DNA from: Macrostomum lignano
Taxonomy: Eukaryota
Length of the DNA: 64,000 bases
Assembly: GCA_002269645.1 (NCBI GenBank)
Contig: NIVC01000090.1
Location: forward strand, 62,001 to 126,000
Direction of reading: 5' to 3'
In this document: positions 22,305 through 63,310 of the stretch, piece after piece
Numbering within the stretch: the stretch's first letter is position 1
Layout: the number at the start of each line of letters is the position of its first letter
Position numbers and translations under genes: made by a program
Notes under the pieces: generated by a model
What the model was told of the DNA's origin: nothing
The model's database searches: none
Seen by the model: only the letters and a program-made list of their open reading frames with translations

Positions 22305-23430
22305 CCTGACTTCTGATCCGTCCTACCAGCTGACTTCTAATCCGTCCTACCAGCTGACTTCTGATCCGTCCTACCAGCTGACTTCTGATCCGTCCTACCA
22401 GCTGACTTCTGATCCGTCCTACCAGCTGACTTCTGATCCGTCCTACCAGCTGACTTCTTATCCATCCGACCAGCTGACTTCTGATCCATCCCACCAGCTG
22501 ACTTCTGATCCATCCTACCAGCTGACTTCTGATCCGTCCCACCAGCTGACTTCTGATCCGTCACACCAGCTGACTTCTGATCCGTCCCACCAGCTGACTT
22601 CTGATCCGTCACACCAGCTGACTTCTGATCCATCCTACCAGCTGACTTCTGATCCGTCACACCAGCTGACTTCTTACCCATCCTACCAGCTGACTTCTGA
22701 TCCGTCACACCAGCTGACTTCTGATCCATCCTACCAGCTGACTTCTGATCCATCCTACCAGCTGACTTCTTATCCATCCGACCAGCTGACTTCTGATCCA
22801 TCCGACCAGCTGACTTCTGATCCATCCTACCAGCTGACTTCTTATCCATCCTACCAGCTGACTTCTGATCCATCCTACCAGCTGACTTCTGATCCATCCT
22901 ACCAGCTGACTTCTTATCCATCCTACCAGCTGACTTCTGATCCGTCCTACCAGCTGACTTCTTATCCATCCTACCAGCTGACTTCTGATCCATCCTACCA
23001 GCTGACTTCTTATCCATCCTACCAGCTGACTTCTGATCCGTCACACCAGCTGACTTCTGATCCATCCTACCAGCTGACTTCTTATCCATCCGACCAGCTG
23101 ACTTCTGATCCGTCCTACCAGCTGACTTCTGATCCGTCCCACCAGCTGACTTCTGATCCGTCCTACCAGCTGACTTCTGATCCATCCTACCAGCTGACTT
23201 CTTATCCATCCGACCAGCTAACTTCTGATCCGTCCTACCAGCTGACTTCTGATCCGTCCCACCAGCTGACTTCTGATCCGTCCCACCAGCTGACTTCTGA
23301 TCCGTCACACCAGCTGACTTCTGATCCGTCACACCAGCTGACTTCTGATCCGTCACACCAGCTGACTTCTGATCCGTCACACCAGCTGACTTCTGATCCG
23401 TCACACCAGCTGACCTCTGATACATCCCAC
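22305..23430. repeat. 24-bp minisatellite (CCAGCTGACTTCTGATCCGTCCTA)
   Basis: About 47 highly similar units, ending ~50 bp before the predicted SYT15-like ATG. Confidence 0.95.
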
Positions 23431-23482
23431 CAACTGACACCACTGCCGCCACATTTACTATATAATTAATATTAACTATTAA

Positions 23483-30271
<6,789 letters not shown>

Positions 30272-32399: not shown

Positions 32400-33593
32400 A
32401 TGACGTCTACTACAGAATTTTGGATTTATTCGAACTCTACTACAACTCCGGTGGATAATTTTCGGTTAAAAAGTACAACTAGCAATCTCATTGCTTTCAA
32501 CGTGCTGGTCCTGCCAATGAGCGCCCGAACTCTCATTGCATTTTTATTATCCCTGTGCGCTGTGTTCAGTCTCATGGCTAACTGCATCACATGCCATGTT
32601 ATTCTGCACTCGCGTCGACTACAGAGTACCACAAATTATTTCATCATAGCCCTGAGCATTCCAGCACTACTAGTTACAGTGTGCATGGCACTAGTGCTCA
32701 CCGAGTTGGTAAGCGTCAGATGGCTACTAGGAGTTGAAGTTTGCAAAATCACTGGCGTATTTTTGCACACATTGTTAAGCTCTAACGCTTTTCTACTAGT
32801 GTCAATCATGGTGGACCGATACTACGCCATAGTGCTGCCGCAGAGTTTCAAGATCAGCAGGACCAAGGCTAAGAACATGATAGCGGCCAGCTTCGGTAGC
32901 GCTCTGGGCCTCTCCCTGCCAATGCTGGCCTTCTACGATCAGCTGCGGTGCAGTCCCGGTCACGTGATCTGCGCCTTCTTCAACTCGTTGAACAATTGGA
33001 CAAGCCTGGCCTTCTACGCCATACCCTACGCACTATTGACATTTGTAATGCCCTGTCTAGTGGCCGGTTTGCTGTTCTCCAGAATCTGGGCCTTCGTCTG
33101 GACAGTTAACAAGCAGCGCGGCTCGATCAGAGGTCGGGTACTGCAACGGACGACTAATCACGTGCCCCGGACCAAGATTAAAACGTTCAAACTCATAGCC
33201 TCAGTGTCGGCTGTTGACATGCTGGTTATGAGCGTCATCTTCGCGTTGGAGGTCGGCTTTCTGGCCTACGAAGTCAACGAAGCGCCGGGCTACGATCCGC
33301 TAACTCTAGTGTGCAGCATCTATTTCTTTGACGGATTCGCCAAGCCGATCATGTACGTGTGCATGAATTCGAACTTCCGTCGCGGCTGTCGCGAAGTACT
33401 GTGCTGGTCCCAGATGCGCTGCTACCGACAGGAGCTCTACACCGTCACTAGAGTGTCCGCCTTTGGCAAGAAGAACTACGTCACGGCTGTTGACGTGAAC
33501 GGCGTCACGGAGAATCGATGGGAGAATCCGTCGGTGTTTGAACTGGGAACGGCCAAGTCTGCGACTGTGACTAGACATAGCAATGCTATTTGA
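32400..33593 (+). CDS. GPR19: Class A orphan GPCR, GPR19 orthologue, intronless CDS
   Basis: 7 TM segments, DRY, VPRTKIKT loop, KPxxY in TM7, and NSNFRRGCRE..C.S.M.CYR...YT.T......KKNYV tail characteristic of GPR19. Confidence 0.9.
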   Translation: MTSTTEFWIYSNSTTTPVDNFRLKSTTSNLIAFNVLVLPMSARTLIAFLLSLCAVFSLMANCITCHVILHSRRLQSTTNYFIIALSIPALLVTVCMALVLTELVSVRWLLGVEVCKITGVFLHTLLSSNAFLLVSIMVDRYYAIVLPQSFKISRTKAKNMIAASFGSALGLSLPMLAFYDQLRCSPGHVICAFFNSLNNWTSLAFYAIPYALLTFVMPCLVAGLLFSRIWAFVWTVNKQRGSIRGRVLQRTTNHVPRTKIKTFKLIASVSAVDMLVMSVIFALEVGFLAYEVNEAPGYDPLTLVCSIYFFDGFAKPIMYVCMNSNFRRGCREVLCWSQMRCYRQELYTVTRVSAFGKKNYVTAVDVNGVTENRWENPSVFELGTAKSATVTRHSNAI

Positions 33594-40800: not shown

Positions 40801-43800
40801 ATCCCTCACCTGCTCCTGGCGCGCCTCCTTCTCGTACGCCAGCCGAGACTCTTGCTCCTGCAGAATCATCTTCTCAGACTCTGCCTGCCGCCTCGCCGCC
40901 TCCTCTCTCAATCGAATCTCTTTCTCTAGAATTTTCTGGTTCACCTCCTCTAGCGAGTCCTGCAGTCGGGCCTGCAGGGTGGCGCGGTCGACTTCGGCTT
41001 GGCGCTCGCGCTCCCGCTGTCGCTGCTCCATGCCGTGCAGCGCCTCGTCTCGCTTGCGCGCCTGCTCGGCAAGCGCGGAGTTCATCTGCGTCAGCCGGCT
41101 GCCCAGCTTCTGCTCCAGATTCCTGCGCTCGTCCGACTCGGTCTCCGATCTGAGGTTGGTGAGGGTGTGGACGAAAACAAACTGCTCGTCTCCTAGGGAA
41201 TTCCCTGTTACTATTTTTAGAAAATGGAAATCCCAACTGTTTTATTCCGATGCGCAGGAAATCCCTGTTGCTATTTTTATCTTAAGGAGTGTGGACCCCC
41301 GTAGTTATTTTTAGCAAATGGAAAATCCACGTTGCTATTTTTATGCAAGAGAGAATCCCGTTGTGTCTAAAGTAAATCCTTTAACGCATTTTCAGATGTG
41401 CTTATTGGTTTTTTGTTGTCATTGTTTATCGATAAAATAAATACCGAGTTGGCTTTTCAAATTTAACGCTAAAATACTACTGAACTACTTACAGTAGCAG
41501 ACGCATTTAAAGATGGTTTAATAATCTATTTGCCACATGCAGCGCCTGCCACTCCGATAATACTTAGTTTTTGTAATAAAAAGGGAACTGAGAATTTTTT
41601 GTCTTGGTTGCCATTAGCAACCGAAGGCTATAGGTTCGTGTGCCCATTCTCTCTACTCCGGAGAGGAAGGAAGCTCAGCATCCAAGGCCGATCAGCATCA
41701 ATTGTTCCTTTCTACAGTGTAGTCTAATGGGCCCCAGCTCTTTTAACCCCGGGCGAGTGAATGAAACTTTAGAACAATATGTATAGTCTACCCAACGACA
41801 AGGCTCTGCTGCAAGTGAAGTGCAAACCAAAGAAAAAGGCAAGATTCTTTTTTGCTGGGCTTTGCTATGCTTTGCACTTTTAAATTATCATTTGAAAGTT
41901 CATTTAAGAATTTAATTCATTTAAGAATTTGAAAATTCACTGACAAAATTTAGGTAAGTAGTTCACAATTATTAAACTTGTGATTCACGGAATTCACTAT
42001 GTTTATTCGCAATCTGTGATTCACGGGTAGATAGAACTGTAGACAAGGTGTGGTTCACGGGTAGATTGAACTGTAGACAAGGTGTGGTTCACGGGTAGAT
42101 TGAACGGTAGACAAGGTGTGATTCACGGGTAGATTGAACGGTAGACAATGTATGATTCACAGATAGATTAAGTGGTAGAAAATACAAGATTCACAAGTAG
42201 ATTAATGGCTAGACAATCTGTGATTCACGAGTAGATTTAACGGTAGACAGGTGTGATTCCCGGGTAGATTGACGGTAGACAAGGTGTGATTCACGGGTAG
42301 ATTGACGGTAGACAAGGTGTGATTCACGGGTAGATTGAACGGTAGACAAGGTGTGATTCACGGTTAGATAAGTAGACAAGTTAGTTTACATTTTAACTGT
42401 GCTATCAATCATTTCTAAGTTCGAACTCACCTGGACCTCAGCTCAGTCAGGGCATCTCTCAGCTCTGTTATTTTGGCGTCCACCAGACCTCTCAGCTGCT
42501 GACTCTGCTGATCCAGTTCACTCGTCTTCTCCAGCTTCCTCTGCACACTTTCAAGCCTCAAGTTGTAATCGTCTTCAAGTCGGCGACTTTTCACTTTCAA
42601 ATCGCTGGTCACGGTGGAAAAGTCCAAGCCCTGCGCTTCGAGGCGCTGTTTCAAAGCGCGCATCTCTTCGACGAGTTGGAAAGCGACACGTTCTAGCTGG
42701 CCTTTGGCGCGGGTCATGCTCTGAGGAGAATTTTGGAGTTGAAATTTTGCAGTTTGTTAAAACTAAAAGCTCCTTTTAGGGAATACCGAAGCTCCGTCGA
42801 TCGGGGGCCAAAGATTCTGTAGAAAGGGGCGCCAAAATTCTGTAGAAAGGGGCGCCAAAGATTCTGTAGAAAGGGGCGCCAAAGATTCTGTAGAAAGGGG
42901 CGTCAAAGATTCTGTAGAAAGTGGGGCGCCAAAGATTCTGTAGAAAGTGGGGCGCCAAAGATTCTGTAGAAAGGGGCGCCAAAGATTCTGTAGAAAGGGG
43001 CGCCAAAGATTTTGTAGAAAGGGGCGCCAAAGATTCTGTAGAAAGGGGCGCCAAAGATTCTGTAGAAAGGGGCGCCAAAGATTCTGTAGAAAGGGGCGCC
43101 AAAGATTCTGTAGAAAGTGGGGCGCCAAAGATTCTGTAGAAAGGGGCGCCAAAGATTCTGTAGAAAGGGGCGCCAAAGATTCTGTAGAAGGGGGCGCCAA
43201 AGATTCTGTAGAAAGGGGCGCCAAAGATTCTGTAGAAAGGGGCGCCAAAGATTCTGTAGAAAGGGGCACCAAAGATTCTGTAGAAAGGGGCGCCAAAGAT
43301 TCTGTAGAAAGGGGCGCCAAAGATTCTGTAGAAAGGGGCGCCAAAGATTCTGTAGAAAGTGGGGCGCCAAAGATTCTGTAGAAAGTGGCGCCAAAGATTC
43401 TGTAGAAAGGGGCGCCAAAGATTCTGTAGAAAGTGGGGCGCCAAAGATTCTGTAGAAAGGGGCGCCAAAGATTCTGTAGAAAGGGGCGCCAAAGATTCTG
43501 TAGAAAGTGGGGCGCCAAAGATTCTGTAGAAAGGGGGGGCACCAAAGATTCTGTAGAAAGGGGCGCCAAAGATTCTGTAGAAAGTGGGGCGCCAAAGATT
43601 CTGTAGAAAGGGGCGCCAAAGATTCTGTAGAAAGTGGGGCGCCAAAGATTCTGTAGAAAGGGGCGCCAAAGATTCTGTAGAAAGTGGGGCGCCAAAGATT
43701 CTGTAGAAAGGGGCGCCAAAGATTCTGTAGAAAGTGGGGCGCCAAAGATTCTGTAGAAAGTGGGGCGCCAAAGATTCTGTAGAAAGTGGGGCTCCAAAGA

Positions 43801-44846
43801 TTCTGTAGAAAGTGGGGCTCCAAAGATTCTGTAGAAAGTGGGGCTTCAAAGATTCTGTAGAAAGTGGGGCTCCAATGTTTCTGTAGAAAGTGGGGCTACA
43901 ATGTTTCTGTAGAAAGTGGGGCTTCAAAGATTCTGTAGAAAGTGGGGCTCCAATGTTTCTGTAGAAAGTGGGGCGCGAAAGCTTCCTTAGAGGAACATGA
44001 AAAAGGGGGCAGTTGAAAGTCCAATCGCCGAAATCCAATGCGAATGCTCACCTCGAGGTCGCGTTCCAGTGTGGCAATGCGACTTATCTGCGATTCTCTC
44101 TTAGCGGTGAGATCCTGCTGCCTCTCCAGCGTGAGCTGCTCCACCGATCGAGTCTGGTTCACCACATCGGCCAGGGCGGCCCGTTCGTCAGCCAGCCGCT
44201 CCTCCTGCGCCCGGATTCGCTGGGCCAGCTGCGAAGTCAAATCTGATGAGGTGCGCAACGACGCCTCGAGATACTGGCGCGCCTGGCGTTCCTCTCTGAT
44301 CGCCTCTTCACCGCGACGCGACACGGCACGAACTTCCGTCTGCAGGCGGAGCACCTCGTCTAGGAGGCCTCGATTGGATCGTTCAGCGAGGCCTAGGCGG
44401 GTCTCCAGGCTGCGGACGCGCTCGTCTGAAGAGGAGTCGGCTGCGGAGTTTGCAGCGGGGGCAGCTGAGTAGCTTGAAGCATTGAAGGGCCGAGCGAGGG
44501 GCTCCAGCTGCTGCTCCTGCCCTGAGATGTCTGGCAAAGGCGGAAATCGGCTGGGGAACTGTTGTTGTTGCTGCTGCTGCTGCTGCTGCTGTTGCTGTCG
44601 TTGCTGCGCTGTCGGCGAGGGTGGCAGCTGCGACTGCGGCTGTGGAAAGCTGCAGAATAAATAAAATTAGCGGAAAATCTTGTTGGTGCGACTAGCTATG
44701 TACTTGATAATAATTGGGTGGTATGAATACGCGCAAGGCGTATCAGTCAACAAAATCGCATGTTTTGTCAGGACGTCGATGATGCATTCCGCATCATCTT
44801 CATGCACTTGTGCGTCTTGCCCTTGCATTTGTTTATCTGCCTTCAT
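35958..44846 (-). CDS. CCDC154: CCDC154-like coiled-coil protein; exons 44846-~44732(or ~44703), 44649-44052, 42720-42431, 41149-40810, 40488-40168, [39385-39380], 38974-38834, [38574-38557], 38063-37944, 37382-37212, 36814-36540, 36066-35958
   Basis: Phases agree across GT-AG junctions; C-terminus PRMFVK...VNTWSIYSAYRWMYFK resembles CCDC154 PRVFIK...NCWGVYQAVRWLRWK (recalled, not searched); first exon and microexons tentative. Confidence 0.7.
37525..37852. repeat. Compound tetranucleotide microsatellite (GTAA)n-(CTAA)n-(CTGA)n
   Basis: Direct reading. Confidence 0.95.
39563..39985. repeat. 30-bp minisatellite (CTCAGCAATTCTCCCCATCAGCCTTGACAT)
   Basis: About 14 units. Confidence 0.95.
40610..40740. 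repeat. 33-bp repeat (GACTTCAGACAAACACACATCAATCGATCATAT)
   Basis: 3-4 units. Confidence 0.85.
42015..42380. repeat. ~34-bp minisatellite (GATTCACGGGTAGATTGAACGGTAGACAAGGTGT)
   Basis: About 11 units. Confidence 0.9.
42800..43978. repeat. 21/23-bp minisatellite (GGGGCGCCAAAGATTCTGTAGAAA[GT])
   Basis: About 48 units filling one CCDC154-like intron. Confidence 0.97.
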
Positions 44847-47148
44847 GCATTTTTCCTTTGCAAGGCAAAAAATAGGACAGCCAAAAACTTTCTCGAAAGT
44901 GGAAGCCGTCAGTTGTGCACCCAGTCTTATTTCTGTCTCTCGAGATTCAACCCAACCCTGCCCAGGTTGGCCCATAGACGACTATTTGCTTCATAAATTC
45001 TTGCGAGAAAGTCTTGCAAGCCAAGAAAACTTAATTCATGTCTTTTGCAGATTTTCTTAGCTTGAGAGAATTTCTACGCGCAAAAATCTCGACAGTTAAG
45101 AAAATATTTTCCTTTTTTTCTTGGCTTACAAAAATTTCTGCCGAGATTTTCTCGATTTTTATTAATAGCTACCGTCCATTATCTTCGTCTCTATCTCTTA
45201 GTTTTTTATACGCGTTCGTTGGTTCAAAATATTTATCGAGGAATTAATTAAGCAATCTGTTAGTTAACTCTGAGGGACAATCTTTCTTTGGTGAATTTTC
45301 CAAATCAGGACTTTAGCTACGGTTTGAAAAAGCAAACCAAGGTAAAAGTGATATGTGAATTTTGGAACAGCTGATCACAAGGCGTCTATGTGACGATCAC
45401 AAACCTCTGCTTCTATTAACGATTTTTTGAAAGAATAAGATTCTCACAAATTTATGCAGTGAATCAGAGTTTATATTGAGACATTTTGAAAGAAATGCTG
45501 ACGATTGTAAATATATTAAACTCGTAGCGTAAAGCGCAAGCAAAGCAAGATGAAAAAAGCGAATCATCCTGCTACAGCATTCTCGTATTACTTCAGTATT
45601 TAGCAACTCTTTGCATGCTTCAAAATGCTCGAGTATACTGGAAACCGAGCTACTGGAAACCGTCTAAATTAAATTGGTTTGCTAGCTCACCTTACTTGTG
45701 AAATCGAATGATTGTGGTTGTGACTGGGAATGGCTTACAACAATTAATGAAACAGATTTAATTAGCTATACGATAAAATCCACGCCACTAAAAAGCAAGC
45801 ATCTACTGGCAAAGTTTTTGCAACAAACCTGCGTCGAAGTGGCTGCTCAACGACGCGATAATTTACAAAGTGTTCGGTCGAATTTCGTGCACTGTTCATG
45901 ATTGGCTGCAGAAAAATGTTGATACAGTTAATACTAATAGCACGCAACTTTCCAACTAGTAATTTAATGGCATTCATCGAATTGAAAAAGTAAAAAAAGC
46001 ATACATTTTTAGACTATGCTTTTTTACGAGTATTTACCTAAACAGTGAGAATTTTCCGAAAGTCACACATTACTCTTAATTTTTTATGACGAATGTAATT
46101 ACTCGTAGTGTCAAATATCGCAAGCCCAATAAAATTTTTACTAGTATAAAAGTATAAAACTTTCCTTTGTCTTCAATATTTCAATACAAAGTAAATTAAG
46201 GAATTAAAATATGTAAAATGCAAAATCAGTCATAAAAATCTTTCCTACCTTCTTGTAATAAGTTGGGATGACATTTAGTTCAGCTGCAGCAAGTAACAAG
46301 GCTAATTAAATAAATTATATGCACATGGTAATTCTTGTACGGAAAAAGCTCTAAATAAACGAAACTAAAATTTACCTGACGCAACAACTAAATAATTTTC
46401 TTTTTTGTACAAAGACCCACGGTAAAAATGAACAGTAACAAATATAAAATATCAGATTGTTAGTTTAAAAAACTATGCCTACGGCAAAAATAAAGCTGTA
46501 AAAATTGTTTTAACGTACAACTTTTTGCGCTCGTTCAAACCGACATATCATGTTTCTGAGAAAGTACGCACGCACACAACACACAAAGCCAGATTGTTAT
46601 TGATTGTTATGGCCTGGACCTAAGCCGCAATGCGCAATGAATTGGCTAATTAAGAAGACTTCAACGAGTCATAATCTAGTCATTTTATTCAATTTCTTAC
46701 TTATTATAAATGAGACGTGTATTAGACGATAGACGTTTATTCATTTTTTCTTCTGGTTGAAGTTAAAGGCCTACTACTGCCATACTGGCATTATGTTCTA
46801 CTTCTAGGCCTATTAATTGTTGGGCAATGCTGCAATGCATATTGCTATAAAGGAAAATAGCCAACTGTTCTGACTTGTATATATATTTAAATTAATTCAA
46901 TTGTAAGCCTATTCAACTTAGAAACATTTAGATAGAAGCCTTAACTCAAGGCTTGTGCTAGTAAAACTATAAAAGTTGTTGTCAGAATAAGTTGTTGACT
47001 TATAAGTCCTTATTCTGTAAGTAATGTAGGGTGTATCTAAATGTAAATTATAGTACCTAGCTAATCCTTATAATTAAATAGGCCTAAAAACAAAACAATT
47101 CATAAGGATTTTAAGGCTAGGCTTGTTGTGTAGGCTGTTTTTATGATA

Positions 47149-47601
47149 GGCAGTTGTTATTTGTCCGGTGAATGGACAAATAGCGATGTGGTTATTTGTC
47201 CGGTTACTGGATACTAACCATGCTTTCCAATTTATTTGGTTAATACCGGACAAATAGACATTTTGTTATTTGTCCAGTTAAATTGATAATGCTAAAATAT
47301 CTAGTTCATAAAAACCACAAGGTTAAATATTCCTAGACTTCAAAGACTTCTTACTCATATCTTGATTATTAGGGGCCTATATTGTTATACTAGTGTGTGT
47401 CTTATACATCAAATTATGCCAAATTGAATATACTGCTTTGCTTACACTCTAATATATAAGAAAATATTAATCAGTATATAAGAAAAGGTCTTAAAATCTA
47501 GAATATTCATCATTAAACAAATAAGATACTTGTGTTAGCAATTTAACCGGACAAATAGCAAAAAGGCTATTTGTCTAATCACTGGACAAATAACAACTGC
47601 C
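47149..47601. mobile_element. Mutator(MULE)-type MITE
   Basis: 36-bp TIR GGCAGTTGTTATTTGTCC..., perfect 9-bp TSD TTTATGATA (47140-48, 47602-10), internal TTATTTGTCCRG subrepeats. Confidence 0.85.
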
Positions 47602-49070
47602 TTTATGATATTATTGATAGTTGCTTCCATGTATATATAGTATAGGCATAGCCATAAATATAATAGGCCTAGTATGATTTTTTATCTTTAGTAACTTGGA
47701 CTTTTTCTAAAAATCAAATAGTTTTTATCCATAAATTGCACCTAAAATTTAGCTATGGCTAGGCCTAATGATGACTAATGATTAGGCCTAATCTTTATTT
47801 AGTTTATTGCAACATTAGCTAATTGACATGGTCTATTGCTCCTATTTATCATTTAATTCTTAAATAACTACTAACTTATAAGATTACTAAGTGAAGATAT
47901 AAATATAAATAAGTAGGCCTAAACCTAATAATTTACAAAAATCTTTATCATAATATCAAAAATGAATATATCTATTGTCTATAAAAAATTTAAAGCCTAA
48001 ATTAAAATGCTGAATAGAATTTATATATATAAAATCATTATTTGAATTAGTCGGGTATTTTATTATCTTGGCCATTTAGTATATTTAGGCTTATTTATTT
48101 AGATCTAGAGGTTGGACAAGATCTGCCAATTGATATTTCAAGATGCCAAGTGCCAAGAATCCAAGAAAATTAACTCATTAAAGTGGTACCTATATTAAGG
48201 AATTTAGCCAAGTGTTTAAAAAATAAAGCACTCCAAATTTTGGTGTTATGATTTAAAGGCTATGATTTTTTACTTTTGTTTTTCAAATATACATATAGTT
48301 GTACCAAGAGAACTGCTATTTTTAGTTTTCAGCTTTGTCTAATATGAATACGGTACTTAAAATCTCTATCAAATATTATATCATATTGTCAACAAAATGT
48401 TAAATTTGTAAAAATCCTGAAAATTTAAGGAATTGTCCAACAGAAAATGTCAAATCGCCCTATTTAGATCATATTCATAATAGCCTAAGATAGTTTTTTT
48501 AGAGTTACTTTTGTTATATATATTTTTATATATATGTTACCAATTTCAAATCTAATAGATTTAGACCTACATTTGATAATTTGTAAGCCTAATATACAAA
48601 GAGTATATGAAGAAAAATCAAGTGTTTTATTGTTTATAACAATATTAAAATACAATAATTATGTTTTAGTAGTATAGTATATAAATGCATAACTTCTGAA
48701 TTAAATAGATTAGGTATTTATAAGTAAGGCCTAAGTGCAAATTCTAATTGCCCATCATTTATGTTGTCTCATTTCACTTCTATTTGTAAAAAATATAAGT
48801 AGAATCATTATATTACATCATTATACTATGTTATTATTATAGAAAGCTTTAATTAAAATAAAAAATGCTTATCAGTATTTTAATTTTATATAATGTATAT
48901 AGTTATATAATATAGAGAATTTAAAAAAACTTAAATTATCTATGTTGTATTCAATTTTTTATTCTATTTTGATATATATTATGTTATATATGTTATTATA
49001 TATATAGCATTGTTATTTATACTTGCTTAATGGGTTGTTGCCTAGTGAAAATGTTTTTAGCCTAGTAAGA

Positions 49071-49320
49071 GGGTTGTAGTCTAGTGGTTAAAGCATTAGA
49101 CATTACTTGAAGGTTGGGAGATTGATTCTTAGCTATAAAATTAACCTAGCTATAAAATGGGTATCAATATTAGCTAGGGTATTTAAGGATATCTATGGTG
49201 ACCTAGTCCTTAGACTAAACAGCTATATGCAGCCTTTAGATATAGTGCACAAAGGTTGCAACTAAGCTGTTGGTTGCATATCTGGCCTAATTGAAGCAAG
49301 TGTAAACAATTATTATTATT
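49071..49320 (+). mobile_element. Hypermutated copy of CORE-SINE family B
   Basis: Colinear with 28884-29190 and 60545-60842 (head, CAGCTGTAAAATGGG to TAGCTATAAAATGGG, ATT tail); differences mostly C>T/G>A. Confidence 0.85.
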
Positions 49321-50472
49321 ATATATGCTAAAGATATACAACTATAGCTTAATGGTCTAATATAGTATTCTTATATATTAGTGGTCTATATGTGGCGTAA
49401 ATTAGAATCTTGGCTTATATCTACTAATGTCCTTAGGTCAAATCTCAAAGGCACAATGAAATGTATATGGCTAATGGTATATAAAATTAGAGGCATATAT
49501 ACTCTTGTATAAATGTATGCCTACTATCAAAGTGGGAAAAGGTCACATTAGTCATTTTGCCAATTGTATACAATGTCACTTAAACTGTATTAGGGTGCAT
49601 ATAGCCTTTTGCTTCTAACTAAAATAAGCTTAGGATATTTTAGTATGATTGTCTTTCAATCATATAAATATAAGAATTATGTATCTTTTATGTAATTCTT
49701 TTTAGCCTATCTTTTAGGCTATCTTACTATTAAATAAAAATGCTAAGTAGCTTTTGTATACTAATAAGCTATCAAAATATAGGTATTTTTTCAAATGACT
49801 AAAATTTTAATTTAAATTATTGAGACTTTGTAGTTAACAAAAATAGCAATCTAACTTGTTTTTTTGCTAGTTAAAATTAACATATAATATAGTTTAAAAT
49901 TTTTATAAATGATGTTAATAGACAATTTTTAAAGATTTAATAGCTTAATTTTTGAGGTGCCATGGAATCCTGGATTTAGAACCCCTAATGCTAGATAGAT
50001 ACCCTGTTTTTTCTAAAAGGTGTCAACCTTACTAAACCTGTAACAAATGAAACTATCAAGAACAAATATCATATTAAACTAGAAATAAAACTGTAAAATC
50101 TAAATTAAACCATTTTTTTGTTTGAATGCAAATTGCAAATATATTTTTTTCTAAAATTCTAAATTCTTTTCATCTGATTTTGAAATATTTCTTTTTTATT
50201 TTATTTTGAAGCTCTGAAATTTAGGGGCAAATAAAAATGAATTAGTATTGACAACTTGAGTGTCTTGTCTTGACAAATGGCAATAAAAGTTGGTGTCATA
50301 TATTTGTTAGGAATTTAGAAAGATAGAAATTTTCCTAATTTCAAACTTTCTGATTGATGCCACCTAGCATCCTGGTTTTTAGTTTTGCATTGGGGTTTTG
50401 GACCCTAGATTCCAAATGGCACTGCAATTTTGACAAAACCTAATTTAATAATGTACTTATAAATCTATTATC

Positions 50473-51120
50473 AAGGACAACTTAAATAAGATAGGGAAAA
50501 TGCACTATAGAGATAGGAAGTTTTCATTTTTCAGCACAAAAATTGTTATTGCTTTTTATTGGAGGCAGATCCTATGTTTATCTTTCAATATGTTGTGCCT
50601 TTCTTATTGCTCTATGAATATTAATAAAGCTTTTCATTCAGAAAATTAGGATTCTATGTTAATTTATTATTCTACATACATTTCCTATACCTAACAATCA
50701 TAAAAAGGCATGGCACAGCTCCAATCTTAGGTTTTATGAATCTATTTTATCATCTCTGTTGCAAATATCTGTTATACAGTCAGCTAAGAATGATAAAATA
50801 GACTCAAAAACCAAAGAGCCAAGCTGTGCTATTTTAATGGTTTTTAGGCACAAGACATTTGCAAATGTATGTAGAATAAAAATTAACATAGAGTCCTAAT
50901 TCTTTAAACAAAAAGCTTTATGGATATCAATAGAGCAATAAGAGAGGCACTGCATATCAAAAGATGAACACTGGATCTGCCTCCTATCAAAAGCAATAGC
51001 AATTTATGTGCTGAAAAAATGAAAACTTCCTATCTCCGTAGTGTATTTTTTTCGGGAAAGCCTGCCTTCTAAAATTTTCTAAGAAACAAGCTTTCCCATT
51101 CTTCTACTTAAGTCGTCCTT
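50473..51120. repeat. ~650-bp imperfect palindrome (foldback/MITE-like)
   Basis: Left arm AAGGACAACTTAA..GAGATAGGAAGTTTTCATTTTTCAGCAC.. aligns to the reverse complement of the right arm over >250 bp. Confidence 0.85.
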
Positions 51121-51639
51121 GTCTATTTCTATTATATGCTCCTACAAGTAGAATGAACATATCCATATTTATACCAATAAAAACAAAACCAATAATTATT
51201 TTCATGTACTGAATTACTAAAAGTAGTATGATCGCTAAATAGCTATTTTTTATTCCTAGCATATGCTGTTAGTAGATCTTTAGATGTAATTTTTTTGTTA
51301 TCTATGGTTGATTTTTTTCATCTATATTTAGTAAATTCAGATTGGGTTTTTTACTTCAATAAAGTTTCCTAATTTAGATTGGGTAGGTCTTCCTTGCTAG
51401 GCTTTTCTTTGTAGATCTAAAGTGCAAATTTTTCTTTTCTCCCATAAGCAATACATTTTTTGTCTACTATAAACATTGTCTCTTGCTTTTCTGATTTCTG
51501 TCCTGCCTTCTTGGCCATTTCTTTCTTTCTTTTTCCCGTCTTGTATATACAAGCTTTTCACTTCCATCCCTGCTGTGACCTGATCTGGCTGGTTCATGGA
51601 CTTCTAGACACAGATGCCTGGAATGACATCCCTTTGATA

Positions 51640-52100
51640 ACGTTACCGTGACAAGAATCGCTAAAGAGTCATTGCAAACACCTCACTAGTGACTCTAGCG
51701 ACTCTGCAGCGACTATTGTGACTTTTTAACGACTCAAACAAATGTAATAGCGGCGAATGTTAAGCCACGAGTGCATTACGTGATTTCCACAGTCATTGTG
51801 TTAGTGCTTAACTTCTACTATCTCGAGTAGACTAAATAGAGTTGTTATAAATGCAAAATGCGATTCAAATTCATCAAGTGACGCAGGTGCACTTTAGACG
51901 CAACTTAGTGATTCTACAGCGTCTCTAGCATGCCTCAGATACAACTGTACGGCCCCAGAGTCATTTTAGAATCGCCTCAGGCTCAAAGTCCCAGACAATT
52001 AAACGTCTCAAATTGACTGTTAGGCGAATCTTTGATGACTTTTTGGCGACTTGTACAGTGACATCTCATCGTTTAAGAGTCGTCTAGAGTCACTTCTTTC
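51640..52100. mobile_element. Unclassified dispersed repeat, copy 1
   Basis: Shares GTTACCGTGACAA..AATCGCTA, AAATGC..ATTC.AATTCAT.AAGTGACGCAG and GTCGTCTAGAGTCACTTCTTTCCT with 61817-62200. Confidence 0.7.
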
Positions 52101-52772
52101 CTATTTTAATGTTACTTGCAACTTTTAATGTTACTTTTTTCAATTGGACATCCCTTCATTACAGAACCCAAGCGTCTGAAGCCTATTAATTTTTTTTATT
52201 AGAATAGAGACTTTCGTAGCTAAACGCTTTATGGTTTGTCAAAGTTGGTTAAACACATTCTAGGAAAAGGTTCCAATCTAGTCTAGATATCTATATTTAG
52301 AACTCCACGACTAGCAGCGCCCTCCCCGCTTTCGGGAGTGAACAGAAGAAATCTTCTAGACTGTGCAAAAGTTAGTTTGGAATGTGCGCGCACGGCTTCA
52401 TAGCAGGGCGATGTTGGTCTGAAGTTTTTTTGCCCTTTTCGATTTTCGGGACTTTACGGATATAGCCTAGCGAACTGTTGCTTTGGGGGCGAGGGGGCAG
52501 GTAGGGGCGATGATTTTTTTACGCAAGAAAACTTCCTCTTTTCTAGAGGCTTGATGTATAATAGTAATATTATCCAACAAGCTGATTGGGCCTTGGCTCT
52601 AGGATAACTCATTGGCTGTTGAAATCTATACTTATAGCTACTACTAGGCAACTATCACTCCTTTTTGACATCCATATTTCAGCAGTAGAGGCGTCTGAAT
52701 AGCTGAAATTTATTATGGCTTAAATAGTATAAATACAATACTAATCAATTGCCATATAGAATACGAGTAGCA

Positions 52773-55700: not shown

Positions 55701-58700
55701 TGTCTGTAGATCTGTAGAAGATATGTCTGTCTGTAGATCTGTAGACCTGTCTGTAGATCTGTAGACTTGTCTGTCTGTAGATCTGTAGACCTGTCTGTAG
55801 ATCTGTAGACCTGTCTGTCTGTGGATCTGTAGACCTGTCTGTCTGTAGTTCTGTAGACCTATCTATCTGTAGATGATATGTCTGTCTGTGGATCTGTAGA
55901 CCTGTCTATCTGTAGATCTGTAGACCTATCTGTCTGTGGATTTTTCGACCTATCTGTCTGTGGATCTGGAGACCTGTCTGTCTGTGGATCTGGAGACCTG
56001 TCTGTCTGTGGATCTGGAGACCTGTCTGTCTGTAGATCTGTAGAAGATATGTCTGTCTGTAGATCTGTAGACCTGTAGACTGTAGAAATACGGCAATTTC
56101 TCTGCATAGCTACCTTATTTCAACTCCGTCCATGCTCCTTAGACTCGTTGGATGTACTGAAGCATAGTGACTGTCTCCTAGACTGCTAGTAACCAGTGAC
56201 TGTATTCATATTTCCTTATACAGACTCTTCTTTTCGCAAATATTGGCTTGCATAGCAAAGTGAAGCTCAACTCGTGTCCTGCATGCGAGTCTGCGCAGCC
56301 CTCTTGATTGATGAACGAGTTCAGTATGGTACCTTGTTTAATAAAAACCCTATGAGGAACTCTTTTCCCAGTGAATATTATTTGCATTCGTCAGGCTTGT
56401 CGAAAATTTTTATTTGTAGCCCTGTTCGTATTGGAGATTCTGTTGCTGATCCTTGGCGTGGTTGTACTAATCCGGTTGCGCTATTTTGTCAGCTGCACTG
56501 GTCGGTATTCGCCTATTCGAGTTATGACAGGTTGGTTTTAGGTATTCGGGTGGGGATTTGTAACTGTTATCTTTGCGGGTTGTAGCGCTGTTTATGTCTA
56601 ATGCTGGACCTGAGAATCGAGGAGTTGTCGGGGTAGGCTGTGTCATTGTGTATGACCCTGGGAATCGAGGGGTTGTGCGGGTAGACTGGGTAATTGTATG
56701 ACCCTGGGAATCGAGGGGTTGTGCGGGTAGACTGGGTCATTGTAGGAACCTGGGAATCGAGGTGTTGCGAGGGTAGACTAGGTCATTGTAGGACCCTGGG
56801 AATCGAGGGGTTGTGAGTTAGACTGGGTCATTGTAGGAACCTGGGAATCGAGAAGTTGCGGGGGTAGACTGGATCATTGTAGAACCCTGGGAATCGAGGG
56901 GCTGTGGGGGTAGACTGGGTCATTGTAGGACCCTGGGAATCGAGGGGCTGGGGGTAGACTGGATCATTGTAAAACCCTGGGAATCGAGGGGCTGTGGGGG
57001 TAGACTGGGTCATTGTAAAACCCTGGGAATCGAGGGGTTGTGGGGATAGACTGGGTCATTGTGTATGACCCTGGGAATCGAGGGGCTGTGGGGATAGACT
57101 GTGTCATTGTAGGACCCTGGGAATCGAGGGGTTGTGCGGGTAGACTGGGTAATTGTATGACCCTGGGAATCGAGGGGTTGTGAGTTAGACTGGGTCATTG
57201 TAGGAACCTGTGAATCGAGGGGTTGCGGGGGTAGACTGGGTCATTGTAGAACCCTGGGAATCGAGGGGTTGTGAGTTAGACTGGGTCATTGTAGAACCCT
57301 GGGAATCGAGGGTTTGTGGGGGTAGACTGGGTCATTGTAGGACCCTGGGAATCGAGGGGTTGTGACTTAGACTGGGTCATTGTAGAACCCTGGGAATCGA
57401 GGGTTTGTGGGGGTAGACTGGGTCATTGTAGGACCCTGGGAATCGAGGGGTTGTGAGTTAGACTGGGTCATTGTAGAACCCTGGGAATCGAGGGTTTGTG
57501 GGGGTAGACTGGGTCATTGTAGGACCCTGGGAATCGAGGGGTTGTGGGGGTAGACTGGGTCATTGTAGGACCCTGGGAATCGAGGGGTTGTGACTTAGAC
57601 TGGGTCATTGTAGAACCCTGGGAATCGAGGGTTTGTGGGGGTAGACTGGGTCATTGTAGGACCCTGGGAATCGAGGGTTTGTGGGGGTAGACTGGTTCAT
57701 TGTAGAGACGAGACAGACCATGTGAGTTGGAAGAAATCGAATTCCACATGTATACGGAATTGATGGTAATTTCAGTGGTAGTGGCCGTGAACTGGTCAGT
57801 GACAGTGCTGGTGCTGCTCACAGTCTGGTGCGTGTTCGATCGTGCCGGCCGTAGCTGGGTGAAAACTCGCCGCTTTCAACAGCAACAACAGCAGCGCCAG
57901 CAGCAACGCAGAAGCGTTCTCGATGCGACGAAACGACGAAAAACTGGCAGCAGTCGGAGACGAAATCTGAAGCATAGGTGAATTCCTGAGCAGGCACACA
58001 AGGGCGCGGATACGTACGCAGTCATACGCACAGGCACACACTAACACATGCGCAACTGCTGGCCGATCTGGTCAATGTATCTTATGGTGGACCAGGGGTT
58101 CGTCGATAAAATGCCCACCCAAAAGAAAAGGCGTAGTACTAATTAGATGACGAGGCATTTACCCTTATAGGACAGTCATAGTTACTCCTGCCGTTTACCC
58201 AACGTTGCGTGAATTATGCTTAAGGATTTCTTTCACAGGTATGTCGCACGGCCAGTGTAAATCAGGGGGTTGCGCATGCATGCACACACTCACACAGGAG
58301 TGTACAGCGGCCCTAACTTTATTTATCGTTAGGCATGTACACTTACTTCACTGTGCCTTGGGGGGTTGGTCCTTAAGCTGGGCGTTAATCGCACGAGCAG
58401 AGCCAAGCCGAGATTCCAATTTAACCCCAAATTAATGCGACTGCACTTGGAATCGAGCCTGGGCCGCTGGCGCATCAGAGCGCCTAGCTAGAATCAACAC
58501 ACACACAAACTTTTCTTTGAAAATATTGCCCGACTTAGACAAAATTCTCCGGACCGAACCCTTGCCAGGCAGGCTCTGCTTCAGTACGAACAAATCTGGG
58601 ATAGAAGATTTCGTCGGATGTTCTGCTGCCTATCCAATTCAGAAGCTAGTGGCGCAGGTTCTACTGAAGGTGCTTTTGCCGAAGTTGCTAGGCTGTTCTC

Positions 58701-61700
58701 GGATTTTTTCCAGGATCTGGACGTGGTACCGTCGGATGTGGTGGCTGGATTGGTGCTGCTTCGGCGATGCCAGAAACTGCTTGCTAGAGAAACGCTTAAG
58801 GTAATTTTCCAGTTTGTGATTGATTGATGAGAATAAATGCAATAATTACATAAAATAGATGCGATTGTGTAAGCTCTGAGGTGTCATTGTGTAAGCTCTG
58901 AGGTGCCATTGTGTAAGCTCTGAGGTGCCATTGTGTAAGCTCTGAGGTTTCATTGTGTAAGCTCTGAGGTGTCATTGTGTAAGCTCTGATGTGTCATTGT
59001 GTAAGCTCTGAGGTGCTATTGTGTAAGCTCTGAGGTGTCATTGTGTAACCTCTGATGTGTCATTGTGTAAGCTCTGATGTGTCATTGTGTAAGCTCTGAG
59101 GTGCTATTGTGTAAGCTCTGAGGTGCTATTGTGTAAGCTCTGAGGTGCTATTGTGTAAGCTGTTAACTTGTGTAGGCTGTTGTTCTGTTAACCATGTAAC
59201 TTTTCAACATAGGCTCTAAGGATGAGTTAACTCTCGAAGATCAATTCTGTAACTGCATATAAACTATTTACCTATTGTTATTTAGGATAAATCCAATCAA
59301 GTTCTTCAATTCATGTCGGGCCGACCAATTTACTTGTCAACAAATTTTTTGCAACTTACCGATCCAATTGAACTGAGTAATTATCGGATCGCTTTGCGTT
59401 GTATGAAATACGCACTGGCCGCCTATGGATGCCCTATGCTAGCTTATACTGGTCGGCTCTGCTGCCTGCTGTGTGATCTGAACATGTGCTGCTGCGGAAG
59501 GTTTGTTAACTATTTTATATAGATAGATTTTAAATAGATTTTCTAATGTCGAAGTCTTCGGATTGCTGGTTAAAGTACATGTGGTACTCTTTAGGTCCCT
59601 AGGAATCGAGGATTTTAGGGTTAAAGTACATGTGGTTCCCTTTAAAACCCTGGGAATCGAGGGATTTTGGGGTAAAGTACAATTGGTAGTCTCAGTAATC
59701 TAGAGGCTTATTAGGGCTAAATTATCATCAAAAGTGTTACCCTTTTGGACCCAGGGATTCGAGAGGCTTAGGGTTAAAGTGTCACTGATACCCTTTAGCA
59801 CATTAGAAATCTAGGGGCTTATAGGGTTACAGTACAAGTGGTACTCTTTAGGACTCTGGGAATCGAGGAGTTAGAGTTAAAAATATCATTGGTGGCTCCC
59901 TTTATCTATCCCTTTACGATAGATTATCTATCGTAATCTATGGCTTAGGGTTAAAGTACCCGTATACTAATAAAATCCTAACTTTCTGTAATCCTAAATA
60001 GCCTCATTAATTAAATGAATTTCTATCTATAGTGCTCAAACTCTAACTAGAGAAGACCGACCGAGACGCGACAGCACTGCATCGTGCAGTTCAGTTTGTA
60101 ACAGCGCAGACAATGACTACTGCGATAGTGACAATTCAGATAGATCCCAAACAGCTGGTTGTTGTTGCTGCCGATTGTACAGACCTGAAGCCAGCATTGA
60201 AGCTTTATTGAGACAGCGGGGCATTGACGGCAGTCAATTCCGATTGTTGCACCTATGCACCGATTTGGGCATCGAGCGTACGCCGTTCTACGTTGGAATT
60301 GATTATCGAATGCGACGGGTTATTGTAGCGATTAGGGGTACTCTGTCGCTGCAAGATGTTCTCACGGATTTGACCGCCGATTCCGAAGCGATTCCCGGCT
60401 GTGGCAGCGGTGGCGGAGCTGTGGAGGACGACAGTGACGAAGGCTGGTTCGGGCATCGGGGCATGGTTCGAACTGCTATCTATATTCAGGTGCGGTATCT
60501 AATTTTATTGTTCAAAATGTACTTTTGTAATGAATTAGTAGTAAGGGGTTTTAGCCTATAGTGGTTAGAGCATCGGACTCACGACGGAAAGGTCGGAGGT
60601 TCGATTCTCGACCCACTCGAAACAGCTTGTGTCGTTGAGCAAGACAACTCTGCATTGCTTCAGTTCATCCAGCTGTAAAATGGGTGCCAGCATTAGCTGG
60701 GATAATTGAAGCTGTGTGTGGCGACCCCCAGTCCTCGGACTGAACAGCCGTACGCAGCCTTCAGATGCGCCGCGCGATAGCTGCGGCTGAGCTGTCAGTT
60801 GCACATCCGGCCCGATTAGGGCAGGTGTAATCAATTATTATTTTTTTCAAATACATTAATTAGTATATTGCGCACTTTTAAAGCAGTACAAAGTGTACAT
60901 TTCAGGTGTATAATTTGTACTTTTTAAAGTAACAACTGTACTTTATTGAACTAGTACTGGGTGTACTTTTTAAAAATTATAATGCCTAAAGAAAGTACTT
61001 TTGTGTTATTTTGTGGAATAGTAAAGAATGTACTTTTGTTCCATAGTACAAAATGTACTTTTCAAACATTTTCAGTCAACCCTGGCCAAGCGCAGACTAA
61101 TCGAGCAGGCCCTAGACGAGCCTAATTGCCAGAATTTCGACCTGATACTCACCGGTCACAGCCTTGGCGCTGGCATTGCCTCTATACTAGGCTTATTGAT
61201 GCGACCAATCTACGGTCAACGACTGCAAGTGCTGGCGTTTAGTCCGCCTGGTGGACTTTTATCTTTATCGGCACTTAATTATTCCAAAGAATTCATCACC
61301 TCAGTAGTGGTTGGCAAAGACGTCATACCTCGGGTTGGCCTGCCGCAGCTGGAGCAGCTCCGATCGAGTTTAGTTCGATTAATAAGCAGCTGCGAACGGC
61401 CGAAGTGGTGCATTATTGGTTCCGGCCTGTGCGGTTGCTGCTGCTGCTGCTACTGCTGCTGCTCGAACAGCGATGAAGACAGTCTGATGCTGACTACTTA
61501 TAGTAGGACAGTTGATGAACTGAATGACAGGGAAGCAGCTGTACCAGCGCCTGTTGTTGCCGCGGTTACGCATCGGCCGTTGCATCTGCCTGGTAGAATT
61601 TGGCACCTGGTTCGCGAGGACAAACTGCTCAGCAGTAATAATAGTAATAATAATAGTGCTAATAATCAGCGCGGAAATAAGCGACGAGAGAAGTTGTTAG

Positions 61701-63310
61701 AATTTCGAGTCATCGATTCAGAGTTTACCGATTTTGAAGAGGTAATTTAACAGTTGTTTGTTGTAATACTTCTATGACACTTTGTTGCTAGGGGTTTGCT
61801 TTAAACCCTGTTGAAAATGTTACCGTGACAATAATCGCTAGAGAGTCATTGGGGCGACTCTTCTGTGACGAGGGTGCCGGCATTAGCTGGGGTAATTGAG
61901 CATCTATGTGTGGCCGTGTGTGTGTGGCCGTACGCAGCCAGCAGCCTTCAGATGCGCCGCGCAAATAGCTGCGGCTGAGCTGTCAGTTGCACATCAAGGC
62001 AGGTTGTAATCAATTATTATTAATTTTATAAATGCGATTCTAATTCATTAAGTGACGCAGATGCGCTTTAGACACGACCCAGTGATTCTACAGACAATAA
62101 AACACCACTAAATTACTCTTAAGCGACTCTTTGATGACTTATTTGGCGACTTGTACCGTAACATCTCGTCGTTTTAAAGTCGTCTAGAGTCACTTCTTTC
62201 CTTTGTTTACCTGTGTTGCTAACAGCGACTCTGGGGGAAGACGAAAGTACCGTTGTTAGTAACTACTAGACTTGTTATAAAATAATTGGCTCTTACTGAC
62301 CAATTCGCCACCTTCAGGTGTTGGTGTCGCCTTCAATGGTGCAGCATCACATGGCTGATTACGTATTGGATGCGCTAGAATCTGTGGCCCCAGCAGGTTT
62401 TCATGCCGATCAGTTTTTCAACGATCAAACAATTATTGCTGACGGCTCCCATGAAGAAATTGGAGAATCAGTATTGTTGGGTACAGCGGCTACTACTGTA
62501 TCAGCATCCGGTGATGCTTCATCTTTAATTAGAGCTAGTCGGTTAGCAACTAAAAGTCTGAGAACGCCCAGATCGAGTACTCTGCCATCGCGATTAGGCC
62601 CATTGACACCTAACTGGCTTCCTATCGATCAAATTAATGCCAGTAATAGTAATCGGACTTCTCACGTTGCTAAGCAACTAGCCGCTGCGCCCTTGGCAAC
62701 GCCGGAATCTTTATCGATAGCATCGTCTAGGATTCTGTCTTCCAAGCTATCAGTAGCCGCATCCGCGGAGGACAAGCCCCTGTCGGATGAAGATGATGAA
62801 GATAGCGACAATTTTGAAATGCCAATGCGCAGTCAACTGCAAAGGCCGGTGTCTCTGCACGAGAATTTAAGCGGCTATTGTTACTACCTGTTCCCCGACG
62901 AGGAGAGCGGCAGACGGAGACCGTTTGACGATATTTTGCCGAAGCCTAGGATTGACTTTGGTCGGATTGCCCACGCGGTTGGTAATAGACAATTGCTGTT
63001 GAAGCAGCAACAGCAGCAGCAGCAGCAATGCACTCTGCCGCACAGTTTATCCTCTTGCGAGACTTTAATCCCATCTGCTAAAGGAGAGCACAGTTTTCCA
63101 GACGACACCGTTATAGTTGTCGCATCGGCTATGCTACATACTACTGCTACTGCTAATAGTAGTAGTAGTAGTAGTAATATTAGCAACTATAATTTCAACA
63201 AACAAGAGCCAACAGATGATTGTCAATCTGTTGAGAGGACGCCTCAAATGCTGCGTTCATCTGGTGCTGTCTTGTGCAGACACTCGGATAGAAGAGTTGA
63301 TTACGTGTGA
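52773..63310 (+). CDS. DAGLA: Diacylglycerol lipase alpha-like; exons 52773-52867, 53625-54028, 56420-56530, 57776-57977, 58569-58800, 59286-59500, 60033-60489, 61076-61741, 62318-63310
   Basis: MPGLVLFKRRWSIGSDD start, four TM segments, FF.DLDVVPSDV.AGL, IRGTLSLQDVLTDL, GHRGM, GHSLG nucleophile, FSPPGG, KDVIPR; all junctions GT-AG in phase. Confidence 0.92.
52940..53560. repeat. Degenerate ~21-bp minisatellite (AAACTCATTCTAAGAAATCGC)
   Basis: Fills DAGL intron 1. Confidence 0.85.
54100..54650. repeat. CT-rich 24-bp minisatellite (CCTTCCTCTCTCCCGTACTCTCTC)
   Basis: Direct reading. Confidence 0.95.
55310..56085. repeat. ~20-bp minisatellite (CTGTCTGTAGATCTGTAGAC)
   Basis: Direct reading. 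Confidence 0.9.
56605..57705. repeat. ~43-bp minisatellite (GGGTCATTGTAGGACCCTGGGAATCGAGGGGTTGTG..TAGACT)
   Basis: About 25 units filling DAGL intron 3; degenerate relatives at 59590-59880. Confidence 0.93.
57984..58483 (-). mobile_element. SINE family A copy interrupted by a 233-bp insert (58049-58281)
   Basis: SINE body resumes after the insert; 15-bp duplication GCACACACT(A/C)ACACA flanks it. Confidence 0.8.
58138..58200 (-). other. 28S rRNA-derived fragment (R2 / I-PpoI target region), not an rRNA gene
   Basis: Minus strand GGGTAAACGGCAGGAGTAACTATGACTGTCCTATAAGGGTAAATGCCTCGTCATCTAATTAGT versus conserved 28S GGGTAAACGGCGGGAGTAACTATGACTCTCTTAAGGTAGCCAAATGCCTCGTCATCTAATTAGT. Confidence 0.85.
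58868..59162. repeat. ~22-bp minisatellite (TGTGTAAGCTCTGAGGTGTCAT)
   Basis: About 13 units. Confidence 0.92.
60545..60842 (+). mobile_element. CORE-SINE family B, CpG-intact copy
   Basis: Near-identical to 28884-29190. Confidence 0.85.
61817..62200. mobile_element. Unclassified dispersed repeat copy 2, containing a 3' fragment of SINE family B (~61878-62022)
   Basis: Shared ends with 51640-52100; internal CATTAGCTGGGGTAATTGAG...CAATTATTATT matches family B. Confidence 0.7.

Follow-up and report, generated by a model that had tools for sequence, protein, structure and literature searches.

Directional cytosine decay of a SINE-like copy within a CpG-poor repeat island of the flatworm Macrostomum lignano

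The closest described systems to the one reported here are repeat-induced point mutation (RIP), the mosaic methylation of invertebrate genomes, non-CpG methylation of the DNMT3 type and the editing of retroelements by APOBEC/AID deaminases. The DNA analysed is a stretch of 64 kb of the Macrostomum lignano genome (contig NIVC01000090.1, positions 62,001 to 126,000), called the window below, and the element in question is a copy of a short interspersed element (SINE)-like family, family B, at positions 49071-49320 of the window, which has lost all its CpG and many of its CpA and TpG dinucleotides. It lies next to a copy, also decayed, from another SINE-like family, family A, in one of two AT-rich, CpG-poor islands. 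The explanation that we favour, with a probability of roughly 45%, is slow and repeated deamination of cytosine in a repeat island that would be methylated or heterochromatic in the germ line.

Regarding RIP, the resemblance lies in C:G to T:A transitions that affect repeated DNA on both strands (79 G:C>A:T changes against 8 A:T>G:C in the two decayed copies), in a preference set by the 3' neighbour of the cytosine (CpA), and in AT-rich, TpA-rich blocks with sharp borders. In some fungi RIP also acts at CpG. The thresholds in use are a TpA/ApT ratio of at least 0.89 and a (CpA+TpG)/(ApC+GpT) ratio of at most 1.03; here the first ratio is 1.05-1.35, inside the RIP range, whereas the second is 1.12-1.34, outside it, CpA+TpG not being depleted relative to ApC+GpT. 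Unlike in RIP, C>T is also frequent at CpC and CpT, intact members of both families occur nearby, and the DNA is that of an animal. The intact A and B copies, together with the unreduced substrate index, disfavour RIP proper. The papers listed by our literature search describe RIP as fungal, and none of them reports a RIP-like process in an animal.

Invertebrate genomes with mosaic methylation, recognised by a bimodal CpG observed/expected ratio (o/e), show local and sharply bounded CpG loss, mostly through single hits to TpG or CpA, on a CpG-normal background, and the rest of the window, with CpG o/e near 0.8-1.2, corresponds to such a background. However, pure CpG decay predicts raised CpA and TpG and a TpA o/e of about 0.9, and it predicts neither the 10:1 G:C>A:T bias at non-CpG sites nor the two-fold CpA preference observed here; in addition, the islands are repeat nests and not obvious gene bodies. 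Methyltransferases of the DNMT3 type, whose non-CpG methylation is mainly at CpA, follow the order CpG > CpA > CpT/CpC (CpG > CpA > CpY, with Y a pyrimidine), which matches the order of the C>T rates here; we know of no invertebrate in whose germ line CpA methylation has been described to leave a mutational footprint. APOBEC/AID editing shares with this locus the clustering of C>T and G>A within copies of retroelements, but differs from it in strand symmetry, in the dependence here on 3' and not 5' context, and in the spread of the changes beyond the elements.

Two decayed SINE-like copies and their substitution spectrum

The window holds four copies of family B and five of family A, of about 300-350 bp each. 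They are listed below with their coordinates and strands.

49071-49320 (+): decayed family-B copy, the element under study; 34.8% GC (52% in the intact copies), no CpG, an internal deletion of about 50 bp and an (ATT)n tail
49340-49630 (+): decayed family-A copy, 3' of the decayed B copy and in the same orientation; 1 CpG, against 20-22 in the full-length intact A copies
28884-29205 (+): intact family-B copy B1, used as reference; 13 CpG
60545-60850 (+): intact family-B copy B2, used as reference; 19 CpG
61863-62023 (+): partial family-B copy consisting of the 3' part, located outside the islands; 9 CpG, none of the TA changes
11792-12139 (-): intact family-A copy A1, used as reference
26945-27287 (-): intact family-A copy A2, used as reference
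58260-58486 (-): intact partial family-A copy A3, used as reference
28585-28772 (-): diverged A-like fragment found by nhmmer, used as age-matched control; outside the islands, 54% GC, CpGs kept

The head and the 3' ~180 bp of the decayed B copy align with B1 and B2, and the copy was scored at the columns where these two references agree. The decayed A copy, which starts 20 bp downstream of it, was detected when the surroundings were compared with the window by a transition-blind BLAST (purine/pyrimidine-coded) that was controlled with reversed sequences, and was scored against the consensus of the A copies at 11792, 26945 and 58260. Both spectra are strongly directional: the B copy has 40 G:C>A:T changes (18 C>T and 22 G>A), 4 A:T>G:C changes and 12 transversions, and the A copy 39, 4 and 19, respectively. 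Some 35-39% of the G:C sites have been lost in the two copies, and C>T at non-CpG sites reaches 23-46% per site, against 4% for A:T>G:C.

When cytosines were grouped by their ancestral 3' neighbour, C>T in the B copy was found at 14/30 CpA, 9/16 CpG, 4/25 CpC and 4/25 CpT sites (CpA versus CpC+CpT, Fisher p=0.004), and in the A copy at 13/29, 10/20, 10/29 and 6/23 sites in the same order. Pooling the two copies gives 27/59 for CpA, 19/36 for CpG, 14/54 for CpC and 10/48 for CpT, so that CpA differs from CpY (24/102) with p=0.005 and CpR, with R a purine, from CpY with p=0.0003. Per site, the pooled CpA rate is about twice the C>T rate at CpC/CpT; the CpA component is thus real but modest. The 5' neighbour has no comparable influence: the C>T rates in the B copy are 30% after A, 42% after C, 26% after G and 42% after T, and, weak protection by a 5' G apart (p=0.05), no clear effect of the APOBEC or ultraviolet type was found. 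What determines C>T lies 3' of the cytosine.

Much of this had been seen in a first-pass annotation, made from the letters of the window, and the example strings that it quoted are present in the alignment exactly as written. Its figures of about 14 CA>TA or TG>TA changes against roughly 6 transitions in CC/CT context are essentially right (14/30 CpA against 8/50 CpC/CpT), and the loss of every CpG stands against the 13, 19 and 9 of the other three B copies. The several CG>TA double hits that it mentioned are rarer than implied: the CpGs common to B1 and B2 and aligned in the decayed copy became TG in four cases, CA in two, and TA and TT in one each, the CG>TA count rising to six only when CpGs that B1 and B2 do not share are counted as well. 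Transversions, described as few, are not negligible at 12. The changes were placed in the 3' ~175 bp, where they are indeed found, but mutation extends to the 5' head (49071-49135), which this copy likewise has.

The directional changes are private to the 49071 copy, since the copy at 61863-62023 retains CG, CA or TG at the disputed sites. A source gene of an older subfamily that already carried TA at these sites could in principle produce the same picture, all the more as only four B copies are at hand, and so could an artefact of assembly or base calling. Either is very improbable: the three other B copies agree on CG/CA/TG, the unrelated family-A copy next door carries the same changes, the surrounding kilobases have the same composition, and a change at 35% of the G:C sites, accompanied by long runs of nothing but A and T, would far exceed systematic base-calling error.

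Both strands were affected alike. On the strict column sets of the two copies, C>T was counted 38 times and G>A 49 times on the sense strand, and the two kinds of change are interleaved, with 24 runs observed against 20.8 expected in one test and 14 against 17.6 (P=0.12) in a second, so that the strand runs that processive one-strand deamination should leave were not significant. These counts bear on the idea that APOBEC-type enzymes edited the RNA or cDNA of the SINEs before integration; such editing of retroelements is known in vertebrates (PMC5391955). The two elements have the same orientation, the counts are near balance, a 5' TC/CC preference is absent, and the signature covers a whole island of 4.8 kb as well as a second island without a recognisable SINE. 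Interleaving, the involvement of both strands, the 3' determinant and the kilobase extent together exclude such editing for practical purposes and also disfavour a single processive event.

As to the identity of the elements, the SINE-like copies, which are without established target-site duplications, show a B-box-like GGTTCGAATC / GGCTCGATTCC and end in tails that are (ATT)n or rich in A/T. No tRNA match for the SINE heads was obtained with ARAGORN or with the Rfam tRNA model, even at E<=1, and a transition-tolerant SINE-B pattern search of metagenome contigs matched no further family-B copy. Just upstream of the decayed B copy, at 49030-49070, there are two partial head-like repeats (GGGTTGTTGCCTAGTG..., ...TTTTTAGCCTAGTAAGAG), which suggest truncated or duplicated SINE heads.

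Two CpG-poor islands and the controls outside them

The first-pass annotation had treated the effect as belonging to one SINE copy. It is regional instead, the A copy next door and the whole 4.8-kb island being alike, and the features concerned are the following, none with an assigned strand.

46735-51537: AT-rich, CpG-poor island 1; 27.5% GC, 10 CpG in 4.8 kb, CpG o/e 0.14
6260-8375: AT-rich island 2; 30% GC, a single CpG at 6574 and none in 6575-8374 (1.8 kb)
47147-47603: element resembling a miniature inverted-repeat transposable element (MITE), in island 1; ends TA/GG-CAGTTG...CAACTG-CC/T, repeated TTATTTGTCCGG boxes
50492-51054: large inverted repeat in island 1; arms over ~190 bp with 163 identities, 19 transitions and 10 transversions

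Overall the window has a GC content of about 42% and a CpG o/e of mostly 0.7-1.2. The islands stand out with a CpG o/e of 0.03-0.14, against about 0.8 outside. In island 1 the TpA o/e is 1.03, compared with 0.76 outside, and the GpC o/e is 1.7; its left edge is sharp, as the adjoining 1.7 kb is equally AT-rich and yet has a CpG o/e of 1.2. Island 2, about 40 kb away, has the same signature (o/e of CpG 0.03, GpC 2.0, CpC 1.2, TpA 1.09 and TpC 0.66), and transition-blind BLAST with reversed-sequence controls found no homology between the two islands above noise. Island 2 holds decayed tandem or inverted repeats (6556-6980) and no recognisable A or B SINE. The directional decay is a property of both islands, spans kilobases, and goes beyond one SINE copy. 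Both decayed copies lie in island 1, while all the other copies in the window, three of family B and four of family A, lie outside it; the mutated or intact state follows genomic domain, as had been suspected, with one mutated copy per family, both in the same CpG-poor island. That the same spectrum occurs in two unrelated adjoining elements counts for a deamination-prone domain.

The other elements of island 1 are decayed to different degrees. The MITE has SB/Tc1-like CAGTTG...CAACTG termini, with TAGG before and CCTT after them, and six TTATTTGTCC(G/A)G boxes; it carries 5 of the 10 CpGs of the island and, having retained half of them, is probably a later arrival. In the inverted repeat at 50492-51054, CA/TG pairs between the arms point to independent decay of ancestral CpGs.

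Simulated decay was used to examine which rates could produce this composition. When ordinary DNA of the window was decayed by C>T to 28% GC, the TpA o/e of 1.04 and the CpA o/e of 1.05 of the island were matched only if CpA decayed at about 3 times and CpG at about 10 times the CpY rate. CpG-only decay gave a TpA o/e of 0.89 and a CpA o/e of 1.26, and the TpA o/e stayed at 0.89-0.91 under uniform or CpG-only decay. Ordinary CpG decay, which according to the first-pass annotation does not predict the CpA component, is thus insufficient for the raised TpA of the region, and CpG decay alone as the full cause is contradicted both by this simulation and by the C>T rates at non-CpG sites.

Three sets of controls from outside the islands lack the directional spectrum. 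Private changes in the SINE copies outside, some columns of which are poorly aligned, comprise 24 G:C>A:T, 26 A:T>G:C and 43 transversions. In 22 minisatellite arrays, the distinct variants relative to the unit consensus comprise 82, 52 and 154, respectively, an AT bias of only 1.7:1, and C>T occurs there at 24/92 CpA, 23/77 CpC, 13/32 CpG and 22/89 CpT sites (CpY 45/166), without any CpA preference. The island spectrum of 79:8:31 differs from that of the arrays (chi2=52, p=5e-12) and from that of the outside copies (p=5e-9), and the latter two do not differ from each other (p=0.12). The refuting possibility that the CpA rate equals the CpC/CpT rate is contradicted inside the island by the values given above (p=0.004 in the B copy, p=0.005 pooled). 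The third control, the A-like fragment at 28585-28772, which may belong to another subfamily, shows over ~95 columns 8 transversions, 8 A:T>G:C, 4 G:C>A:T and 3 CpG kept, whereas the decayed A copy shows over the same columns 6 transversions, 2 A:T>G:C, 18 G:C>A:T and no CpG (p=0.0015). Expressed as rates per type, the ratio of A:T>G:C to transversion is the same inside and outside (1.1 and 1.3), and the ratio of G:C>A:T to transversion is 9.7-12 inside the island against 2.2-2.6 outside, which indicates, on a small sample, a roughly 4-5-fold excess of C-to-T in the islands beyond ordinary divergence. The balanced spectrum of the controls ties this excess to the domain and not only to age.

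The TAGGCCTA palindrome and other features of the window

The islands share the palindrome TAGGCCTA, which has 12 occurrences in their 6.9 kb, where 0.05 would be expected, and is absent from the remaining 57 kb.

6880, 7211, 7251, 7411, 7658, 46806, 47080, 47665, 47761, 47784, 47915: examples of TAGGCCTA sites

GGCC is found 25 times in the islands against 2.8 expected (9-fold), usually as T-A-G(n)-C(m)-T-A, and AGGCCT is 39-fold over expectation. Neither strand of a GGCC core contains a CpR step, and such a core should therefore resist the biased decay. Two origins of the palindrome were considered and rejected. Against an end product of CpR>TpR decay, none of the simulations yielded it, and outside the islands its possible precursors (YRGGCCYR) are 35-fold too scarce; if it marked the ends of MITEs from a decayed family, it would require conserved flanks, but these are not conserved beyond the 8-mer, and a motif-anchored test for inverted repeats was not significant. 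A literature search for TAGGCCTA returned primers only. The MITE at 47147-47603, judging from its TA/GG...CC/T ends, looks as if it had been inserted into a TAGGCCTA site or were able to leave one behind, which suggests that TAGGCCTA may be an excision footprint of such a MITE.

Among the genes of the window there is an intronless gene on the plus strand (32400-33593) for a rhodopsin-family G protein-coupled receptor of 397 aa, GPR19-like according to the named hits outside flatworms. In the database it is closest to two Macrostomum lignano proteins, with 48-50% identity, the next hits, from other invertebrates or unnamed sequences, having at most 39%; the receptor gene and its relatives identify the 64 kb as animal DNA. 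Lipase_3, FYVE and ATG27-like exons are also present. An open reading frame (ORF) of 328 aa on the minus strand (27-1013) lies in a stretch of 60% GC and contains the CCHC zinc-knuckle-like motifs CSHCGKPGH and CKKCGKLNH; no Pfam match was found for it, and it looks gag-like and is probably part of a retroelement running off the window.

The density of minisatellites is unusually high, with at least 25 arrays of 17-50-bp units that make up a large share of the window, many of them yielding long spurious ORFs.

4230-4815, 14706-16539, 22306-23438, 42803-43985, 56609-57705: examples of minisatellite arrays

A third repeat family, C, is represented at 51600-52150 and 61790-62260 by segments that are ~85-90% identical. 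The first of these adjoins the right edge of island 1 and has kept its CpGs. The copy at 61.8 kb, in which the 3' half of a family-B SINE takes the place of the central part, sits between two long ORFs of a locus containing Lipase_3, possibly DAG-lipase-like.

Proposed chronic deamination in a modified repeat island and its alternatives

In the explanation that we favour, SINE-like elements would have inserted into a repeat-rich island of ~4.8 kb before deamination. Measured against transversions and A:T>G:C changes, conversion of cytosine to thymine reaches there, on both strands, about 4-5 times its level in the remainder of the window. The order of rates in the island is CpG (saturated) >= CpA (~46% of sites) > CpC/CpT (~23%), as expected if the domain were methylated or heterochromatic in the germ line and the methyltransferase preferred CpG over CpA and CpA over CpY; later insertions into the island would be less decayed. 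We infer that 5-methylcytosine was the substrate, that the process acted in the germ line and that it was chronic rather than a burst. The mostly single-hit conversion of CpG to TG or CA, together with the CA/TG pairs between the arms of the inverted repeat, is the classic mark of methyl-CpG deamination, and the unequal decay of the SINEs, the inverted repeat and the MITE argues for a chronic process acting on whatever occupies the domain. The word hypermutation, used in the first-pass annotation, suits the strong directionality of the changes but not a discrete event, given their interleaving, the rise at CpC/CpT, the additional transversions and deletions, and the graded decay. The observation behind it is thus confirmed and extended, and its interpretation partly supported.

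Macrostomum lignano is reported to have kept DNMT1 and DNMT3, which are reported as lost in parasitic flatworms and planarians, and to have low levels of 5-methylcytosine, while genome-wide methylation patterns in free-living flatworms are, according to one review, unknown (PMC11292947, PMC9246332). The reported presence of these enzymes and the order CpG > CpA > CpY together favour a methylated or heterochromatic island.

Several observations weigh against this explanation. The raised C>T at CpC/CpT in the decayed copies would need relaxed methylation or a second cause, and non-CpG methylation is, to our knowledge, generally reported as minor in invertebrates. Neither the GpC excess of the islands nor the abundance of TAGGCCTA is accounted for by deamination. 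About 10 of the ~30 differences between B1 and B2 are CpG<->TpG/CpA, the commonest class, so that CpG decay is not confined to the islands; CpG hypermutability, or variation of the source genes at CpGs, exists outside them too. The decayed copies have 5-10% transversions against 1-4% in the intact copies (3-5 times more) and several deletions, which makes them the older ones, and age and domain are therefore partly confounded. Finally, the inferences drawn here rest on two elements inside a single window.

Some of these points would be met by an effect of age or epoch. The islands would then be the oldest neutral DNA of the window and would record a genome-wide regime of strong AT bias with CpG and CpA hot, perhaps from a past of heavier methylation, the remainder consisting of younger repeats, satellites and constrained sequence. 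The extra transversions and deletions of the island copies agree with this, as do the CpG differences between B1 and B2, a few CpA>TpA changes in the A copies outside, the crowding of the window with young tandem arrays and repeats, and the graded decay among the elements of the island. We nevertheless regard it as rather unlikely, because the 22 arrays and the private changes of the outside copies have only a slight AT bias and no CpA preference, because the A-like fragment, at equal transversion distance although possibly of another subfamily, has kept its CpGs without any G:C>A:T excess, and because the AT-rich left flank of island 1 retains a CpG o/e of 1.2.

An active defence, RIP-like or based on a deaminase, could alternatively have hypermutated the cluster of repeats in a single burst or a small number of them, turning CpR into TpR in both strands. 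The preference for a 3' purine in the absence of a clear 5' preference, the involvement of both strands, the sharp edges of the islands, the TpA/ApT ratio of 1.15-1.35 in the two decayed copies and the positive composite index of the B copy are what such a defence would leave. It would not be homology-wide, since three B and four A copies are untouched within the same 64 kb, and the substrate index is not lowered, with values of 1.12-1.14 for the copies and 1.29-1.34 for the islands. The interleaved C>T and G>A without strand runs, the mostly single-hit CpGs, the uneven decay between the elements of the island and a literature that describes RIP as fungal-specific point the same way, and we consider the defence improbable. 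The same low probability attaches to its broader form, in which a defence or chromatin state of the flatworm would mark repeat islands for C-to-T change at CpG and CpA on both strands, possibly in connection with TAGGCCTA, which is at least 35-fold enriched in both islands. Should an active mutagenic defence prove true, it would provide a case of RIP-like silencing in a non-fungal organism.

Under the favoured explanation of chronic deamination, CpG-erased and TpA-enriched islands with decayed mobile elements would preserve, as a sequence-level fossil, the sites of cytosine modification or deamination in this flatworm, and they are recognisable from sequence alone by CpG o/e, TpA o/e and TAGGCCTA. 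So read, the islands would suggest that repeat nests are targeted and that the activity extends beyond CpG.
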